From Hyaloraphidium curvatum SAG 235-1 (Eukaryota; Fungi; Monoblepharomycota): a stretch of 64,000 nucleotides of DNA. The position numbers were made by a program, and so were the translations under genes. This document shows, piece after piece, positions 21,995-62,272 of this stretch. The stretch is taken from positions 372,001 through 436,000 of the forward strand of contig JAIVFI010000025.1 of NCBI GenBank assembly GCA_025558095.1, read 5' to 3'. Positions within the stretch are counted from its first letter, which is position 1; every line of letters begins with the position of its first letter. The notes below the pieces were generated by a model, which saw only the letters and a list, made by a program, of their open reading frames with translations, did no database searches and was not told the origin of the DNA.

Positions 21995-24900
21995 ATGCCG
22001 TCGAAGGCCGCGGGCGCCGCGGGGGGGGCGGCCATCGCGGCGCTCAAGCAGCTGCTCGATCGCGCCAAGACGACAAAGACGACAGCCAAGTCGCGGCGTG
22101 CGGCCAATGGAAATGCCGAATCAGCCCTGGAGAAAGAGTGGGACGGCCTGTGGTTCGGCCCGGAGGGGACGGCTCATATGCGTCCTTCTCGCGTCCAGCG
22201 TGAAAGCGGCGTTCGCCCGGATAGCCGATCTCTTGTCTGCCGACTTTCTCGACAACTTATCCAGCGCGTCTGATGTGCTTGTCAGCCTGCGGAAGCTCGT
22301 CAGTGTATTTTCACGCGTCCCATCCCTTGCGGAGAAGATTGCCGAGACGGTCGCCGACATCCTCGACCGAGTCAACATTTCTATCCTGCGGGCCAAGGCG
22401 GGACACATTGCGTCACTCAACGAGATAGTCGAGAAGAGCGTCAGCCTCGTTGAGGTGCGTCGATCGCGCACCGTCCTGGACTGGTGCTAACTTCGCGCAA
22501 CTCTGCTCACTTCCAACTCCGTTCTTGCAATCGCTGAACAGGTCATGATCCAGGATGGCTACCTCGGTGAGCTCAGAGGGTTTACGGGGAGACAAGGGCA
22601 CTTATGTCCCCGTTCGAACCACAGGAAACGACGACGCTTCGAAAAGGAGCCTGCAGTGCCTCGTCAGGCTGATTCTGAACGGCAATCGGTACTACATGAA
22701 GAACAGACGGCGGGCAATGGACGTCATTGGGCTCGTTTCTGAAGCGGAGCCAAGCAAGCGGCTTCTTGTTCAGACCCCGTCGCTTCACAAGAGTGTGCAT
22801 CGTTTGCGCGACATCGGAGGTGCACCAGCTCTTGCGTACCTGCTGACAACTGGCCTGACACGCGCCTCGGGCAGATTACTGTCTGCAGGCCGAGTTCTTT
22901 GATGTGCTACGGACAGCTGCACTCGCCGCGGACGACGAGGAGAGGGATGGTTTTCTTGCCAACGCATTCAGGGGCGAGGAAAGCTTTCTGAAGGACTTTC
23001 TGGAGATCGTCCAGCGACCCCATGTGAGTTTGCCGTCCACGTTTCGTACTCGGAGCAGACAGTTTGAACCCACATGAAGGCCGACGTTCGACAACTTCTC
23101 CTAAGCTTCAACGCGGAAGCAAACGGCATCGACAAATGGTGTGCGAGCTCCCGTGCTGCCGAAGCGTGGTTCTCATCGTCTTTTCCAAGTCCGCGATCGC
23201 TCGAAGTGTCTTCCCTGGAGTGCAACAACATCCAAGCTGCGGCTGGGCAAGAGCAGAAGCTCTGGCTCGATCTCAACGTCGATTCTTTGTCTTTCACGAC
23301 GGTGGCTCGGATCGTGGGGCGAGCGCCGCTCTTCGGTTGTCACGCCTCTGACTGTCTGCAGGATGACGCCCAAGACGAGGCCGTCGTCAGCGTCATTTTG
23401 CCTTTCTCGGAAATCAAGAGCTGGAGCTTTGAGAAGGCGGACGGTAATTCGTACGCATTGCTAGCCCGGTCAGATTCAAACAGCATTCCTCTAGAGGACG
23501 TTGTTCGCCTGATCGTCAAGTCGGAAGCTGTCAAGGGCCGGGGGACGGAGAGCAAGACCAGCACCATCACCGCACGAGGAACAATGGGCCGTGATCTATA
23601 CCAGACCGTGACCGCAGCGTTCAAGCGCAAGGAAGTCGCAGGCTTCGTGAAGGGTGCTCCAATTGAGGCGATAAGCAAGGCTGAAGAGCCCCACGCACCT
23701 CGCACACGGTCGGCCAAGGTGTGCGCAGCTCGGTGTGGTGGTCAGCTCGAACTTAATTCGCCTCTTGTAGAAATCCATTGCCGAGCACCGGATCTTGGTG
23801 AAGCCCGCAAGCAAGCCGACCGAGAACGACAGCATTGAAGACGACTTTTCTCATCACGAGAGTGCGGGCCAATTCGAGACACGTCCAGCCGGCGATCGTG
23901 AAAAGTCGCAACGCGCTGTGGAGGCGAGAACCCGCGAAGAGCTGGATTCCTTGATGGAGCCGCCGCAAGATGAAGCCGCTCCTGAACAGCACGAGGCTAA
24001 AGCCGTGGACGACGCCGTTGCCAAGCGTCGCCATCCTGCCCGATCCAAGAAGCGCAAGCATGCGTCGGATGCGGAAGACGACGAGGCTGTCGCCGCCAAG
24101 GAACCTCCGCGCAAGGCAGCTCGCCGCAAGAACCAGACGAAGGAAGATCGAGAGCTTCGTACGACCCCTCGCCGCAAGAACCAGACGAAGGAAGATCGGG
24201 AGCTCGATTCGACGTCTCGCAGCAAGAAGCAGGCAAAGGAAGATCAGGAGCTGGAAGCGACGCCTCGCCGCAAGGACGAGACGAAGGAACGTCGAGAGCT
24301 TGATGAGCCGTCTCGGCGCAAGAAGCAGACGAACGAAGATCGGGAGCTTTCTGCGGCGCCTCAGGATCATCATGGGGCCGGACAGTCACTTGCAGCAGAT
24401 GCGTTGTTCGTGCCCGCGAGCGTTCCGGGACCACGATCGACTCGACGGGTTGAGGAGGGCGCAAATGCTTTGCAACGTGATGTGGATCTACCGGAGAACA
24501 CTGTCTCGGAAGGAGACGATGCCGCAGACGCGAGCAAAGACGTGCACGACGGACATGGAAACTTGCACGTCGGTCCGCTCGAAGGCGGCAACGAAGAGAA
24601 CATGGTGGCCAGCCAGGATCGGTCGGGCAACAACTCTCCGTCTAGCTCGTTGTGGCTGCCGAGGAAAGTTGAACATGCCGGAATCGAAGAGGCAGATGAC
24701 GACGATGTGGTGAGTTGTCCTCTGGTCTGGTGCCCATCGCACGAGCTTCCGAATTCACTGGGCAGATGGGCTTCATTTCCCCAACGCTCGAGTCGATGAA
24801 GGGAAATCAAAGCGCGCAGGTGGTCGCGGCGGCGATGCTGGAGTTTGCTGACTTGGGCACCGGTGGGGATGCCTGCCTTTGCTGACGGCGGTCGATCTAA

Positions 24901-53565: not shown

Positions 53566-55032
53566 TCACGCCTCGGGCAGCCAGTCCCAGTTCTCCGGCT
53601 CGAACAGCTCCTTTCCCTTCCCCCTGCACACCGTCAGCGCGCCCTCCCTCGCCATCCCCGAGCGCGCGGACCCCCGCGCGACCATGGCCCGCGACGCGCA
53701 CCCCAGCACGGCGTCCTCGACCTGCGCGGCGAGCAGCGTGCGGCGGCCCGATACCGAGATCGGGTCGCGGGGGAAGCGGGATTCGGCGTCCCGGAGGAGG
53801 GAAGAGAGAGGGGGGTGGGACAGGAGGAGCGGGAGGAGGAGGACGGTGGGGGTCGAGTTGGTGCCCGGGGGTGCGCCGCGCGCCGAGACGAGGGCGTCGT
53901 GCAGCGCGCGCAGCCGGTCGGGCGGCGCGTCGGAAGATACGACGATGCAGGGCGGGGGTGGGGTGGGAGGGCTGTCGCCCTCCTCGTCGCCGCGGCCTGC
54001 CCAGAGGCTGCGGTCGAGCGAGGCAAAGTGCGCGCGGGCGGCGCGGGTCAGCACGGCGGCGGTGCGGGGGAGGTCCGCGGGGCTGAGAAGGGCGGCGGGG
54101 AGGAACGAGGAGAGGTACGGCGGGATCTCCTTCTCGGAGAAGCGCGGCGGCGAGGGCAATGCGCCGGGCGGGTCCTTGCCGGGGGGCGCCAGCTGGCGCG
54201 CGTCCCAGGCGGCCAGCCCGGCGTCGCCCAGGAATATGTGGGCGAGCAGGTCCATGGCCAGCTGGCGCACCCAGTCGGCGGGCCGCACGACGTAGGCGGC
54301 CTCGAGGGCCACCAGCTCGGGCGCCTCGCCGCCCAGCGACGTCGGCAGCCGCAGCGGGAACGGCACGCCGAAGGTGCCGACGAGCGACGTGTTGCCGATC
54401 GACCGCGGGTCCAGCACGACGGTCTCTGCGCACGCGAACGGGCGATGGGGCCACTGGCCGGGCGGCGGCGGGCGGCGCGCCGACTGCGCGTCCACCAGGC
54501 ACGGCACGCGCCAGTCCTTGAATGCGGGCTCGCTGGGCTTCAAGCTGGCGTTGTACTCCGGCGGCGGCAGGAAGCCGTCCGGGCCGTGGGCCCAGCCGCG
54601 GTCCGCGCCGCCCAGGATGTTCCACTCGGCCTCGAACAGCTCGCCGATGCGCACGGAGCCCTGGGCGGGGCGCGGCGCCACGCAGAGGTACGGCCGCACC
54701 ACGCGGCAGTTGAGGATGCGGCGGGCGGTCCACAGCAGCCGGAGCAGGGCGCGCAGCTGGTCGGGCGGGTGCAGCGGCGCCGCATCCCCCGGTGCGTCGA
54801 AGCACACGTGCGCGACGAGCGTGCAGCGCGCCGGCACGCCCTGCGACGGCAGCGCCGACGGCCGCGGGAACGGGCGGAACGGCCACTCGCCGCCGGGCCC
54901 GCTCGCGTTGGAGAGCGTCCACGGCCGCCCCGCGTCCAGCTCGGCCTCCCGCGGCCCCGCTCGCAGCCGCCACGCGACGAGCAGCGCGCACAGCAGCGCG
55001 AGCCCCCAGCGGCCACGCAGGCCGAGCGCCAT
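53566..55032 (-). CDS. Type II membrane protein, possible O-fucosyltransferase-like glycosyltransferase
   Basis: N-terminal TM; IVVSSD and VEDAVLG..S..MV..GS..SG pattern; intronless 488-aa ORF. Confidence 0.5.
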   Translation of the reverse strand: MALGLRGRWGLALLCALLVAWRLRAGPREAELDAGRPWTLSNASGPGGEWPFRPFPRPSALPSQGVPARCTLVAHVCFDAPGDAAPLHPPDQLRALLRLLWTARRILNCRVVRPYLCVAPRPAQGSVRIGELFEAEWNILGGADRGWAHGPDGFLPPPEYNASLKPSEPAFKDWRVPCLVDAQSARRPPPPGQWPHRPFACAETVVLDPRSIGNTSLVGTFGVPFPLRLPTSLGGEAPELVALEAAYVVRPADWVRQLAMDLLAHIFLGDAGLAAWDARQLAPPGKDPPGALPSPPRFSEKEIPPYLSSFLPAALLSPADLPRTAAVLTRAARAHFASLDRSLWAGRGDEEGDSPPTPPPPCIVVSSDAPPDRLRALHDALVSARGAPPGTNSTPTVLLLPLLLSHPPLSSLLRDAESRFPRDPISVSGRRTLLAAQVEDAVLGCASRAMVARGSARSGMAREGALTVCRGKGKELFEPENWDWLPEA

Positions 55033-55805: not shown

Positions 55806-58800
55806 ATGGCGTCCCCGCGCCCCACCGCCCGCATCTCCCAGCTCTCCTCGCACCTCTGCGCCCCCCCTCCCCCGCTCTCCGCCTCGCCCACCGACGCGCC
55901 CTACGATTCGGAACCCGCCCCGGCGTCCGAATGGGACGCCGAGCTCGCGGAGCTCCGCCTCCGCCTCAAGATGGCGCGCGAGGTGCCCGCGTCGGACCCC
56001 GGCCGCGTGAGGCAGGCGCAGCAGGGCAAGCTGATGGTGCGCGACCGCGTGGCGGGGATGCTGGACGGGGGCAGCCTGGTGGAGATCGGGTCGATCGCGG
56101 GCAAAGGGACGTACGATGAGGAGGGGAACGTACGAGGGTTCACGAGGGCAAACTACGTCGCGGGGCGCGGGACGGTGGGGGGGAGGCCGGTGGTGGTGGG
56201 CGGAGACGACTTCTCGGTGAGGGGAGGACACGCGGACGGGGCCATCTGGCGCAAGGCGCAGTACACGGAGCAGATGGCGCGGGAGCTGCGGATCCCGCTC
56301 ATCAGGCTGCTCGACGGGAGCTCGGGGGGCGGCTCCGTGGCGAGCATCCTGAAAAGATGGATTCGGATATGTGTAGGCCGATTGGTCGACCGATCCGGTG
56401 GGCAGAGTGGGGTGGGTGCTGTCCAAGCAGTCGAAACCCCCAGCGAACCCCCGCCCCGCCCGGCGTGTGATTACATACTCGCGGAAGATTCCTAGCTTCA
56501 TTTCATTGCTTCCTTTAGATTATGTGTTCCCGCCGGGAATTCGAGGCTTTTCATTCTCGGTCGTTCAGCAGACGTAATTGCCCCTCGAACGCGCCCGATC
56601 CCGCGCCCCCCTCCCTCCCGCGCTGCCCCCGAGCGCGAAGCGACGTCCACGGTTTCCATCTGCGCCCGAAATGGATGCCGAATCCGGGCCACTGGGCCGG
56701 CGCCGTCGCCCGGAACACCCGAGATGGCGCCGTCCCTAGGAACCGCCGTCCCTCGTGATCCAGCCACGTCGGGACGATGCCGTCGTCCCCCGAGACGCCG
56801 TTGACGGCGGTGAGCACCTCTAAAGGCCGACGGCAGCGCCAAAGATGGGAATCATGACGCGTCCGAGCAGGTTAAGGTGCCTGGTAGACGTCCCTTCGGC
56901 GACGACTGTCCGCCGCGTTCCTGCCCGAGTACGCACCGCAGCGACGATGCAGGCGGTCAAGTCACATTCCGTAGGTATTGCCACCGTCGGATCCGGCCCC
57001 GCGGGTAGGTTGCCGACGTGTTTCCGTCCCCAGGTGCTCGCCCGTGCGGAAACGTGCTCGCGGGACAGGAAGGCGGCCTCCAAGAGCCGCGGGCCCGACC
57101 TTTCGACGTGAAATCACGACACTTGCCGTCCAGTATCGTCAGATTGGCATCCCGACAGAGCCCCGCGGAGTTGGTCGCCCGGGGGCGATGACGGTGCGCG
57201 AGGCGCGACGCTGCCGTGGCCAAACGGCCCCGAGGATGCCCCGACGGCGGCGGAACCGGCGAGCTCTGCCACCATCAGGAACCTCCCGGGACCGTGACCG
57301 CGGCGTCGGGGCACCGGCGGGGGAACGGGGCGGCGACGTCCCACGAAATGGGACGCCGTCTGGCGCACGGGGGAGAGCCGCCACCGGGTTGCCTGCCCGG
57401 CAGGGGGCGTTTGGAAGCTGCTTCTTTCGGCTTTTGAGCCCGCTTGCCAAGTTCCGGGGCGCTTGTTAGGGACGCCCGCGGGGATAACAGAGATGGCGCG
57501 CGTGGATGCGACCACCAATCATTTTCGAAGCTTCATCTTCGAAGCTTCGCGCGCAGGACAAGCGCAGCGAAGCGCGGCTCGCTGGAACCGCCGGCAAAAG
57601 GCAGCGCAGGCCCTTGGAAGCGAGGAAAGAAGCTCAGCGTTTTCAATTCGGACGAGCAGGAGGCAGAAGGGCCCAGAGCGTGCACGTTCAAAGTCAAATC
57701 AGCAGCTCTACAACTCACCCTCGTCCTCCTTCCTAGCGTCGCGCGCCGCCTCCCTCGACCGCCTCAGATCCTTCGCAGTCTTCAACCTGCTGGGCAACCT
57801 CCGAGACGTCGGTGCGGGAAGGGTCGGGGGGAGCGAAGAAGGAGCGATGCTGGGCTGCGGGCGAAAGAGGGGAGAGTTGAGGATCGAAGCTGCACGTGGT
57901 ACGTCAGAGAAGGCCAGTTGACAACCAGCTGGAGCGACTTACTGTTCTCCAGATCCTCCGTCTCGTCGTCAGACGAGCGGTCGAGGGTGTACAACGAGCG
58001 ACGGCCCAGGTCGTCGTCGTCCAAGTGCGGTGCCTTGCGTTTGCGGATGGGCGGCTTGAAGAAGGAGGCAGGAAGGCGAGGGTCAAGATCTCGTCGACCT
58101 CCCCGCTGTCGAACCTGCCCACCTCCGGGTTTTGCTCGCGGGTGTTTGTCTCCAGGTCTTGCTCGTTGTCGCTCTGCTCCGGGTCGTGCGTCTCGTCAAA
58201 GTCATCTGCAAAGAGAGCGATGATCAGCAGGGAGACTGTCGACGACAGGGGCGCTCACCGAAGGGGACGAAAGCCAAGCGCTCCAGCCCGGCCGCGATCT
58301 GGTGCATCACAGACTGGCCTTGCGGGGCTGCCTGTCGACGGGCTCCGGGGCCGCGCTTGCGACGCTCGTCTGGGAACATGTCCGGGCCGAGGAAGAGGCG
58401 GTCGCCGACCTCGGGGCCCTCGTGCGCGATGAAGGCCCTGAGCTCCTTCTCGGTCCTGGTCGAGCGCGTTTCCTTGAAGGCCTTGATGAAGAACTGCGAA
58501 GGAAACGAAGATCAGCGCGCGGTCGGGTCTGTGCCGACGCCCCACCTCAGCCGCTGCATGCCGCGGGACCTGCTTGGTCTTCTTGACGAGGTCCAGGAGC
58601 GGCTTGGCTGCACGAGCGTCGGGGTCGATGCCCATGTCGCGAAAGGTGCGACGCCTGTGGTCGTTTTCGCCGACCAGCTCGGTCTTCAGGAACTCCTTGT
58701 CAATCATCTTGTGGCCCGGGTAGGCGCGCCGCGCTCGAGCCGAGAGGGGCCCGCCGCGGCGGATGCTGGAGGGCCTTTCGGCCTTGTCTGCAGGCTGCAA

Positions 58801-61800
58801 CGAACGAAGCTTCAGATCACGGTGGGAACAAGCGGGGCGGCGTGCTGCTCACGTTGAGGTGGTCGAGGTGTGCCATCTCATGGACCATCTTCAGCTCCAC
58901 AAGGTTCTCGAACTCGACTTCTTCGTCCTCGTCGGCGTACATCTCGGGCATCAGGCGACAGCCGCAGTCGGCGGGATTCGCGAGGCCGATGACACAAGGA
59001 AAGAAGCCTTTGTCGTGCGGGTGTGCTGCCTGGAGGATTCGCGCCATCTCGCCGAACTTGTACCGGTGGTAAGAGTGGTCTTCGGCCGCGGCCGCGAGGA
59101 CGAGGAGCCTGCGAGCGGCTTCGCGGTTGGCGGACCGTGCCGAGCCATCGCGGATCGAGGAGGGCGGTGCGGCGCTCGCGCGCCCCTTGCCCTTGGCGCC
59201 CGCGGCGGCGGCGAGAAGCTGAGACGACATTTTGGCGGAGGGTAGCGGCACTCTTGGAGGTGAGGTGAGGTGAGGAGATTCTCGGTTTTGTGAGGACCGA
59301 TTACTCAGCGGTCGCGCCTTTGTCGCACCCCGAAGGGCGCGAACCATCGTACGGTTTTGGTCGCGAATCGCCTTCGCGAACCATGCCTATATATGGCCCG
59401 AGATCCAAGGGGCAGCCCGCAACCGCTCGCCCCCCACGCGCTCCACCATGATGGGGCCCGTCAGCCCGTCGTCCTCGCCCCCTCCGCCGGCCTCTCTGCT
59501 GACGGCTCCCACGACGGCCGCCCCCGCGACCAAGCCCCACAAGAAGGGCCGCGCCGAGAACGCCCCCGCGCCCCCTCCCTCCGCGCCCACTCCCTCTGCG
59601 CCCCCTCCCTCTGCGCCGGCCTCGAACGCCGGGTCCGCCTCCGCCCCGCCGGCTCTCATTCAGAAGAGGGGACCGCGGCCGGGAGCGCCGAACGCAGGCC
59701 GGAAGCCCAAGGACGTCTCACATGACCCCAAGAAGCTTGCCAAGCAACAGGCGCAAAAGGCCTACGACAAGCAGCGGAACGACGCGAAGCGTGCCGCGGC
59801 GGCCGCGAAGGAGTTGACGACCTGGGAGGCCAAGACCGCCGAGAAGAGGGCGAAGGAGCTGCAGAACATCGCGGACTCGACGGCGAGGAAAAAGGAGGCG
59901 ATCGCGCAGGGCCTGGTGAGTCACGCCGATCTCGGGTCTTGTTCGCTGACTTCCCGTTGCACAGCTCGTCCCCGGCACCGAAGACAAGCAGCGCGAGATG
60001 GAGTACAGTTACGACAAGTACACGGAACGCCGCTTGCTCACGGGCTGGATCAAGTTGTTCCTGGTGGGGCACGCGCTTTCCCTCTCTGCTGTCCCCATGC
60101 TGACTCTAGGCCAGTGGCTCGAGCAAGACGGCAAGTGCGCGGGCTGCGGTGGGCCGCTCGAGGACCTGATTCTCGACTGCAATCACGCTTTCGGCAAGGT
60201 GAGCTGGAACCGTGCTGGTCACTTAAGGTCCGTTCATTTCGCCTCCTCCCAGAAGCGCTTCCGGCTCGCCAAATCCAGCACTCACAAGCCAAGCGACACG
60301 ATACGCGAGGCCCCCAAGACGGATCTCCGGCATATAATCTGCCACAAGCTTGAAACCCGGCGCCAGATGAAGGCTGGAGAGGTCAAGTTTGGGCGGTCCG
60401 GTTTCTCGAAGGGCCACGGGTCGGCCGAACAGGAGTAATCTATGAGAAAAACAGTTGTAGACGGCTTCCGTACACTGCGAAGCACATTCAATTCAAGGCA
60501 GATTCGAAGGCCTTGTTTGTGTCAACAAGCTCCTCTTTCCGCTCCGCGCACTCCCAGCAGACGCGCATCGACCGTGTGCTCCTTACAGTCGCGTATTCCT
60601 GCCTCGTGTCGCTCGCGGAGAGCTCGCCCGCGGGCGCTTCCGTGGCAGTGCGGCGGTGTCGCGCATCGGCATCGGGTCGACCGTTCGCGAACGTGCGTCC
60701 GGGGCAGCAGCGACGGCGTCTCGACCATCATCATCACGGCAGCGACAGCGGCACGGCGCGGATGCGGCACTTGAACGCCTACCGGCCCGCTCAACTCCGG
60801 TTGGAGCTACAGTTATATCCCTCCCAGCGTCAAGATGGAGCACATGGTGAAGCTGCTGGCGGAGGTGCCGGTCGTGGCGGCGTGCCTGGGGCCTGCTGTG
60901 GGCTTGGCTGCAGCCAAGGCAACCCTCACCCATTTCAGCGTGATGTGCAAGGTGGATATGGCTTCCTCCTGCTCACCGTCTCCTTTCTTACCACTTGCAA
61001 TTGTCACCGGCACGCAGGGCATCGGATCGCTCTTCGCCGCGGGCCCCCCCGTCGTCTCCCACGCCACCCACGAGACCGTGACCAAGAACCAGCTCGGCGG
61101 CCCCTCGATCCACTGCCGCAACGGCACCGTGGACAACGAGTGCGTCGACGAGGGCGAGTGCTTCGCGACGCTGGCGCGGTTCCTGTCGTACCTGCCGTCG
61201 TCGCGGTACGAGCTGCCGCCCTGTGTACCGTACCAGGGGAGGAGAAACAACTGGACGCCCGCGGGGCTGATGGTGGGGGAGGACGCACAGGTCATCGTCG
61301 ATGCGATCCCGCACAACCGCAAGAAGCCCGTGGGCCGACCGGCGCCCCTCGTCGTCCTTATTCGCTGACCGACCGCTCCGCAGTACGACCCCAAGGTCTA
61401 CGTCGAGCGGATCGTCGACGAGGACACGCTGTTCGAAATAGGCCCCGATTGGGGCCGCGAGCACCGCACCTTCCTCGCCCGGCTGGACGGCCGCCCCGTC
61501 GGCGTCCTCGCCTCGGACCCGCGCTTCGGCGGCGCCGCGCTGACCGCCCTGGCGTCGTCCAAGATCGGGCGGCTGGTCGGGATCTGCGCCACCTTCAAGC
61601 TGCCGATACTCAACTTTGTCGACTGCCCGGGGTTCGCAATCGGGACGAGGGCGGAGAAGGAGGCGACCATCAGGCTGGGAAGCAGGCTCGCATGTGTGAT
61701 GTTCGAGAGCAAGATCCCGTATTTTACCGTCATCGCGAGGAAGGTGGGCACTCTCTGGTCACCCTACGTGAAGCGGAGCTGATCTCTCGCCTCCGGACAG

Positions 61801-62272
61801 TGCTTCGGGGTCGCTGGCTCCATCCTCGCCAACCCGGGCCAGGGCAACATCGAGCTCTCTTCCGGCATGGACCTCCGCATCGGGTGGTTAGTGCTGCCCC
61901 CGGATCCGTTACCCGCTGCCGCTGACCGTGCCCCGCAACAGGCCCATGGTCGAGGCCGGCAGCCTGCCCATCGAAGGCGGCATCGAAGCCGCCTTCAAGG
62001 GCGAACTCGAGGCCATCGCCGACCCCGCGGCCCGCGCGGCTCGCAAGGAGGTCATCGACCGCGAAATCCGCGCCTTCATGAGCCCGCTGCGCACTGCCGA
62101 GGCGTTCGACCTCGAGGAGCTGGTTGACCCGCGGAGGACGAGGAGCCTGGCGGTGCCGTGGGTCAGGAGGATGTACGAGGTGCGGCTCCCGCAGCTGATG
62201 CACTTGGAGATGGGGAGGGCGGACGGATGGGGACCCAATGCGGTGGGCGCCAAATCGACGTACTTGCCGTGA
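55806..62272 (+). CDS. Acyl-CoA carboxylase carboxyltransferase (PCC/MCC beta-like), split by a 4.4-kb insertion
   Basis: 5' part: QGKLMVRDRV, DDFSVRGGHADG, RLLDGSSGGGSV (to ~56361). 3' part from ~60806: SYIPP, LGPAVG, FAAGPPVV, LGG, ARLDGRPVG, FVDCPGFAIG. Confidence 0.85.
57533..59230 (-). CDS. Hypothetical protein in the insertion (degenerate Cys/His motif), multi-exon, possible frameshift near 58.1 kb
   Basis: ORFs 58817..59347 and 58255..58800 and downstream segments linked by GT-AG introns; FPC..DCGC..HEMAH. Confidence 0.5.
59448..60438 (+). CDS. Putative zinc-binding HNH endonuclease with coiled-coil N-terminus, 4 exons
   Basis: Spliced WLEQDGKCAGCG..LILDCNH..K|KRFRL..IREAPKTDLRHIICHKLET. 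Confidence 0.65.

Follow-up and report, generated by a model that had tools for sequence, protein, structure and literature searches.

A two-gene block of 4.4 kb in the coding sequence of a carboxyltransferase gene of Hyaloraphidium curvatum

How does a protein-coding gene come to be interrupted by 4.4 kb of DNA with two further genes, and still look intact on both sides? This question is raised by a locus of Hyaloraphidium curvatum, a monoblepharid and early-diverging fungus. The DNA analysed here (the window, 64 kb in all) comprises positions 372001-436000 of the record JAIVFI010000025.1 (653,716 bp) in assembly GCA_025558095.1, and coordinates below are those of the window. In it, a gene for a propionyl-CoA-carboxylase-beta-like carboxyltransferase (PF01039) breaks after GGGSVASILK, with the codon of the last K at 56352-56354, and resumes at 60814. 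An earlier note on this DNA suggested that the intervening block is an unclassified mobile element carrying an HNH nuclease. We favour, with a probability of about 0.4, a one-off recent insertion of host-like DNA with two orphan genes, which would have inactivated this copy of the carboxyltransferase gene.

The split carboxyltransferase gene

Both parts of the gene were recognized by profile comparison. The plus-strand frame from 55806 corresponds to positions 2-101 of the PF01039 profile (E = 2.6e-9), and the frames 3' of 60814 correspond to positions 164-236 and 258-377, the exon matches, which extend over both crotonase-like halves, being above the gathering score. In a PDB sequence search, exon 1 aligned to residues 10-133 of acyl-CoA carboxyltransferase beta subunits (best E = 2.4e-12). 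Six exons could be mapped, at 55806-56354, 60814-60951, 61018-61329, 61384-61743, 61801-61886 and 61942-62269, followed by a stop codon at 62270-62272. Exon 1, when read up to 56357 on the plus strand, comprises about 184 N-terminal codons and ends with GGGSVASILK(R); the right-hand part, from the TGGA at 60802-60805 through exons 2-6 to the stop, occupies 60802-62272 of the same strand and opens at 60814 with the frame YIPPSVKMEHMV. The four introns separating exons 2-6 are of the GT..AG type and 54-66 nt long, with boundaries and phases kept.

For a finer placement of the break, a profile hidden Markov model (HMM) with 531 states was built from 40 full-length homologs, and each exon was aligned to it separately. 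The H. curvatum exons cover states 9-523, exons 2-6 accounting for 158-523. The alignment of exon 1 stops at match state 152 and that of exon 2 begins at state 158, which leaves about five residues without a counterpart; the set of exons is complete. The block thus falls between residues which are adjacent, within about five positions, in every homolog. In the homologs this stretch reads like GGGSVATILKTGHSYIPG; the two sides of the break in the window read GGGSVASILK (left) and (GW)SYSYIPP (right). One uninterrupted translatable gene was not found: the block stands between states 152 and 158 and introduces in-frame stops, the frame running past the break meeting one at 56493-56495. At the level of the assembled DNA, this comparison shows that an insertion happened and that it disrupts the reading frame. 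Profile matches, PDB alignment and HMM mapping agree on a two-gene block of 4.4 kb in an otherwise intact carboxyltransferase gene, and it was confirmed that the split arrangement is real in the assembly and had been described accurately in the earlier note.

The earlier note had also argued for a recent event from the lack of stops and frameshifts in both halves. The intactness itself stood, since all six exons are preserved, while the argument from stop codons lost most of its force. The GC content across the window is 60-77%, and at this composition (65-75%) spurious open reading frames (ORFs) of 300-500 aa, out of frame or antisense, are common, which makes the absence of stops weak evidence for intactness. 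True genes are better recognized by their strong bias in GC at the third codon position (GC3), which is 0.76-0.95 in the flanking genes. Stronger evidence comes from the 162 positions which are at least 90% invariant among the homologs. The H. curvatum exons match 133 of the 153 such positions that they cover, and the nearest intact relative, on a Logan contig (L002, from SRR23967301), matches 131 of 161 covered. Together with the intact splice sites downstream, this speaks for an intact gene more clearly than the lack of stops. Judged by its coding sequence, the split gene is without sign of decay, apart from the block. Such a lack of decay means that the event is young, or that function has been kept somehow, for example by another allele. 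From the undecayed state of the split gene we infer that the insertion was recent.

The Logan contig is 27 kb long and carries the closest carboxyltransferase homolog (52% identity in the N-terminal part) as an intact gene, with two short introns near the position of the H. curvatum break. A relative of either of the two genes in the block was not present on these 27 kb.

The public annotation mirrors the split. NCBI lists the carboxyltransferase as two distinct models, one of 202 aa and one of 420 aa that starts at 60844. The 202-aa model (P0001) is named "ClpP/crotonase-like domain-containing protein" and is 100% identical to our N-terminal carboxyltransferase frame; its splicing leads from GGGS to a last exon at 57033-57111, in the left arm of the block. 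An independent assembly of H. curvatum was not found in the protein collection that we searched, in which the NCBI record alone holds these sequences.

Junctions of the block and the intron question

The tetranucleotide TGGA is present at 56358-56361 and again at 60802-60805. Direct reading bore out that deletion of 56362-60805 restores the frame and gives ILKRWSYSYIPP. Also as proposed earlier, an alternative AG/AG join exists, in which removal of 56357-60812 gives the in-frame sequence ILKSYIPP. At the left TGGA copy (56358-56361), the start of the block can be placed no more precisely than to these four nucleotides, and possibly several more. When pairs of windows of the same size were drawn at random from this sequence, 48% had an in-frame shared 4-mer as good as TGGA. 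Given this chance rate and boundaries that are uncertain by several bases, we do not count TGGA as a target-site duplication. The 8-mer AAGATGGA was considered as a longer duplication and rejected. Its first copy (56354-56361) lies immediately 5' of the block, its second (60832-60839) 30 nt past it; it is out of frame and located beyond conserved coding sequence, and thus cannot be a target duplication. In the window this 8-mer occurs five times.

Could the block be spliced out? An ancestral short intron could have received an insertion with two genes, so that about 4.4 kb would now be removed as a very long spliceosomal intron with the two genes nested in it. Relatives do have short introns in the same stretch. 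In Bifiguratus adelaidae, a GC-AG intron of phase 1 interrupts the Gly codon that follows ILKA, within the same gap of five residues, while the intron of Amanita inopinata follows SVAV and that of the Logan relative follows SYIPG, both 4-7 codons away. These positions differ among the three relatives. With approximately 25 introns in the three genes (from gene spans) on about 550 codons, we estimate that one would fall in a five-codon gap in about one of four cases. Given this expectation and the differing positions, the coincidence with the Bifiguratus intron carries little weight.

The ends of the block also have some resemblance to an intron. The last 25 nt on the right look like an intron 3' end, with GCTCAAC, 14 nt and a CAG ending at 60812, and the left end, AAAAG/ATGGAT, is one base away from the host donor AAG/GTGGAT of the next intron. 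Removal of the block by splicing would in addition fit an undecayed gene. On the other hand, no suitable pair of splice sites could be drawn. We enumerated every GT, GC or AT donor in 56325-56495 with every AG or AC acceptor in 60700-60834 and translated short windows across the junctions; among these pairs, no in-frame GT-AG, GC-AG or AT-AC combination gave a homolog-like protein. The in-frame GT-AG options either delete the conserved YIPPSVK or insert 36 residues without coding signature. The AG/AG join was rejected as an intron as well: it needs a non-canonical AT-AG pair and leaves the loop three residues short, without a Gly conserved at 90% or more. Moreover, the ten introns measured at the locus are only 49-68 nt long, and the public annotation has the gene in two pieces. 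A very long intron is therefore, in our judgment, very unlikely.

The Bifiguratus intron raises an annotation question of its own. In MVBO01000008.1 (L003:2260-2370), the protein model P0059 is devoid of about ten conserved residues (GSVTLILKAG). A GT donor within the coding sequence was apparently used there instead of what appears to be the GC-AG intron (G/GCAAGT...CACTAG).

Two genes within the block

Codon-phase GC profiles divide the 4.4 kb into two coding stretches and two non-coding arms. The first coding stretch, gene A, is on the minus strand (59230-57708) and has six exons in three frames, at 59230-58853, 58794-58546, 58493-58259, 58205-58123, 58054-57943 and 57889-57711 plus the stop codon, encoding about 413 aa. 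Its introns are canonical GT..AG introns of 52-68 nt with a host-like GCTGAY branch motif, and GC3 is 0.78-0.87 in every exon. NCBI has no model for this gene, which sits in a gap of 2.6 kb in the annotation of a gene-dense surrounding.

Gene B is on the plus strand (59448-60438) and has two exons, 59448-59915 and 59965-60438, for about 313 aa; they were delimited by codon-position GC and by the intron of 49 nt (GTGAGT..GCTGAC..CAG). The first exon is Pro/Ala-rich and then Lys/Ala/Glu-rich. The GC3 values of the two exons are 0.87 and 0.71-0.91. Exon 2 contains two more possible introns, and we read it as continuous since both are in frame and have a coding-type GC3 (0.71-0.75). Over gene B, NCBI lists a 153-aa model on the minus strand (59718-60333). 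In this interval the plus-strand GC content is 0.60, 0.42 and 0.92 at codon positions 1, 2 and 3. Going by composition and by the intron signals, the plus-strand gene B is probably to be preferred to the annotated model.

The starts of the two divergent genes are 217 bp apart. This intergenic region (59231-59447), in which TATATATGG occurs, presumably serves both genes as promoter. The left arm (56362-57707, approximately 1.35 kb) shows little codon periodicity, if any, and no matches to families, and the right arm (60439-60801, approximately 360 bp) is non-coding. Pfam scans of the ORFs in both arms were empty, and Rfam and tRNA scans found nothing in the block. A patch of codon-like GC periodicity with an 88-aa ORF is present on the minus strand of the left arm (56551-56817), without family matches; it could be a decayed exon.

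The six introns of genes A and B share the architecture of those in the carboxyltransferase gene, namely GTGRGY at the 5' end and GCTGAY about 15-20 nt upstream of the CAG. With this architecture and a codon bias of the host type, both genes look native or long-resident in this genome.

The same features bear on the possibility that the block is an assembly chimera, or a structural variant confined to one haplotype in a diploid that has an intact allele elsewhere. The perfect preservation of the gene apart from the block would fit such a situation, and an intact allele could have escaped our attention: by the sum of exon lengths its product would have about 596 aa and thus lie outside the range of our homolog search (179-570 aa), and only one assembly of the species is in the protein collection searched. 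However, the composition, codon bias and intron style of the block match those of its flanks, the block lies deep within a contig of 654 kb, and a chimera would need two wrong joins, 4.4 kb apart in the assembly and both no more than a few bases from one codon. We therefore consider an artefact or a haplotype variant quite unlikely.

What the two proteins do could not be deduced from similarity. The searches for homologs of both genes took single exons one at a time, and very distant relatives may have been missed in this way. No exon of either gene had a match in Pfam, NCBIfam or PADLOC, or a significant one in PHROG. For gene A exon 1, a phmmer search (E <= 0.001) returned 0 matches among 1.84 billion representative proteins, which means that there is no annotated paralog in H. 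curvatum itself either. A tblastn-style scan of prokaryotic genomes with gene A exon 3 gave no match. Two metagenome matches to gene A exon 2 were discarded as relatives, since they consisted of a short Arg/Ala-rich seed. For gene B, a word-indexed search gave no match to the C-terminal part (among proteins of 80-255 aa) or to the N-terminal part (166-527 aa), and tblastn-style scans of metagenome and viral contigs were likewise without match; the protein collections contain no annotated paralog of gene B. Searches of PDB sequences with gene A exon 1 and gene B exon 2 yielded chance matches only, and the single-sequence AlphaFold models of these exons had a mean predicted local distance difference test score (pLDDT) of 42 and 42.8, respectively, values too low for a comparison of folds. 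Literature searches about the Hyaloraphidium genome and transposons, and about fungal elements with endonuclease VII, returned nothing relevant.

The earlier note had named an HNH nuclease as the only enzyme-like product of the block. The best family match of gene B is to the PHROG endonuclease VII family, with E = 0.1 over 27 residues around CAGCGG..DCNHAFGKV in exon 2; a PHROG HNH family matches a different stretch of gene B (E = 0.54). By eye, the first half of the HNH/endonuclease VII pattern (CxxC ... DH.H) is present as CAGCGG..DCNH, while the second half (C..CN, with the second Cys pair and the conserved Asn) is absent downstream, the nearest candidate being IICHKLE. With this half-motif and the PHROG value on one side and empty Pfam, NCBIfam, PADLOC and PDB searches on the other, the nuclease assignment is not significant; nothing shows that gene B encodes a working nuclease, and we do not support this claim. 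The larger gene A has a HEMAH (HExxH) motif in exon 1, which had been overlooked and which is likewise without family support; the C-terminal part of its product is acidic.

Two further observations concern the surroundings. At 53566-55032, on the minus strand, a single-exon gene for 488 aa without Pfam family is annotated in a stretch of 73-77% GC; it is overlapped by two spurious ORFs of 487 and 514 aa in other frames, which illustrates how little weight a lack of stop codons has in this genome. Four to five tandem units of 48 nt, 79-84% identical to each other, are located at 24120-24362.

Origin and meaning of the block

If not by splicing, the block may be explained by mobility. In this case, an unclassified mobile element would be moved by gene A with its HExxH motif and by gene B with its endonuclease-VII-like half-motif, and TGGA would be a target-site duplication of 4 bp from a staggered cut. 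Several observations are compatible with it: an intact coding exon is cleanly interrupted and its frame is restored upon removal of the block and one TGGA; the two genes form a compact, self-contained unit with a promoter region of its own; the weak match to endonuclease VII (E = 0.1) is there; and gene A is missing from the annotation, as could result from repeat masking.

The block was searched for the features by which mobile elements are recognized. As noted before us, domains of a DDE transposase, reverse transcriptase, tyrosine recombinase or Rep/helicase are missing according to Pfam scans that covered all exons and each ORF of at least 88 aa in the block, and there is no inverted repeat that would pair both block ends, the longest pairs being internal (14-27 nt, 70-93% complementary). 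Terminal direct repeats beyond chance length, long terminal repeats, A-runs, a poly-A tail and tandem repeats were not found in the block. By eye, the ends read TGGATTCGG... and ...CTCCGGT(TGGA), and the 5'-TC...CTRR-3' termini, the 3' hairpin and the A^T site of Helitrons are absent. Outside the block, the other 59 kb of the window contain no further copy or fragment of it, at the level of DNA or of protein. Since both genes have kept their introns, six in total, retroposition is excluded.

These results, and the 48% of trials in which a TGGA-like match is expected by chance, weigh against a mobile element. No hairpin or other terminal structure marks the ends, no frame encodes a known mobility domain, the HNH/endonuclease VII motif is incomplete and reaches significance in no library, and no relatives of the proteins were found, gene A exon 1 being without annotated paralog in the species; in this the proteins are unlike typical transposon proteins. 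In the sequence analysed we see no positive evidence that the block is a mobile element, and we regard this part of the earlier proposal as unsupported: a significant target-site duplication, a terminal structure and a second copy in the window are all missing. Mobility of this kind is in our opinion unlikely.

In a more radical variant, the block would be the first copy seen of a new kind of nuclear mobile cassette, with proteins without known relatives (one with HExxH, one degenerate and endonuclease-VII-like), a 4-bp staggered cut at TGGA and a bidirectional promoter of its own. Alternatively, the block would be removed precisely from DNA or RNA in a non-canonical way, with the TGGA copies serving as pointers; such a removal would explain why the host gene is undecayed. 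We consider both variants highly unlikely.

We return to the one-off insertion. According to this interpretation, a 4.4-kb piece of Hyaloraphidium-type DNA would have been inserted in one recent event into a coding exon of the carboxyltransferase gene. It would have brought along two complete, divergent, lineage-specific genes, the promoter region that they share and approximately 1.7 kb of flanking non-coding DNA. Instead of transposing, a segment of the genome may have been captured, or relocated, at a double-strand break and joined there with little homology or none. The gene copy would thereby have been knocked out or, at best, left as two fragments, and genes A and B would be ordinary orphan genes of the host and not mobility genes.

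There are, however, points that do not sit easily with it. A donor or second copy of the block was not found in the search, which covered the 64-kb window, and this outcome is compatible also with a cut-and-paste element or a multi-copy family. Gene A remained unannotated in spite of its clean six-exon structure, which repeat masking could cause. The half-motif of gene B resembles endonuclease VII, distant relatives of the two proteins may have escaped the searches by single exons, and the short Bifiguratus intron in the same five-residue gap means that a former intron could have been the site of insertion.

Comparison with known systems gives a similar picture. Capture of genomic DNA at double-strand breaks, by non-homologous or microhomology-mediated joining, occurs in yeast, plants and mammals, usually with pieces shorter than 1 kb. 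The block resembles such events as a single insertion of host-like DNA without terminal structure or mobility genes, and with a few bases of junction homology at most. It differs in its size of 4.4 kb, in its two complete genes and in that no donor locus was identified.

Pack-MULEs, Helitrons and CACTA elements likewise insert a few kb of host-like, intron-containing genes into other genes. They have long terminal inverted repeats and duplications of 9-10 bp, or 5'-TC/CTRR-3' ends with a hairpin at an A^T site, and gene-carrying DNA transposons usually carry gene fragments; the block, in contrast, has none of the defining ends and comprises two complete genes with a promoter. Introners share with it the insertion into a coding exon, the setting in an aquatic intron-rich microbe, short direct repeats and splice-site-like ends. 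They are, however, tens to hundreds of bp long, multi-copy, and create working GT-AG boundaries, while the block has 4.4 kb and no working in-frame boundaries.

Free-standing homing endonuclease genes would be comparable in that a possible nuclease gene lies in a cassette interrupting a conserved gene. Homing endonuclease genes normally ride on self-splicing introns or inteins, and the host gene stays functional. To our knowledge, cassettes with HNH or endonuclease VII homing enzymes are known from phages and organelles, and not from nuclear protein-coding exons. Here the nuclease assignment of gene B is not significant and its motif is incomplete. Finally, genes nested in long introns are similar, with two complete genes between exons of another gene; this arrangement needs a spliceable intron, which cannot be drawn here, and the local introns have 49-68 nt.

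If the block is a one-off insertion, the locus would show a recent gene knock-out of an ordinary kind, in a draft genome, and its main use would be the correction of the public annotation, in which two carboxyltransferase fragments are called separate genes, a six-exon gene was missed and one gene is probably on the wrong strand. If, on the other hand, many copies with the same ends exist, or the block is removed precisely from transcripts, this would point to an undescribed mechanism of mobility or excision in a poorly studied fungal lineage. Should mobility or precise excision prove true, the two orphan proteins would become candidates for the underlying mechanism.

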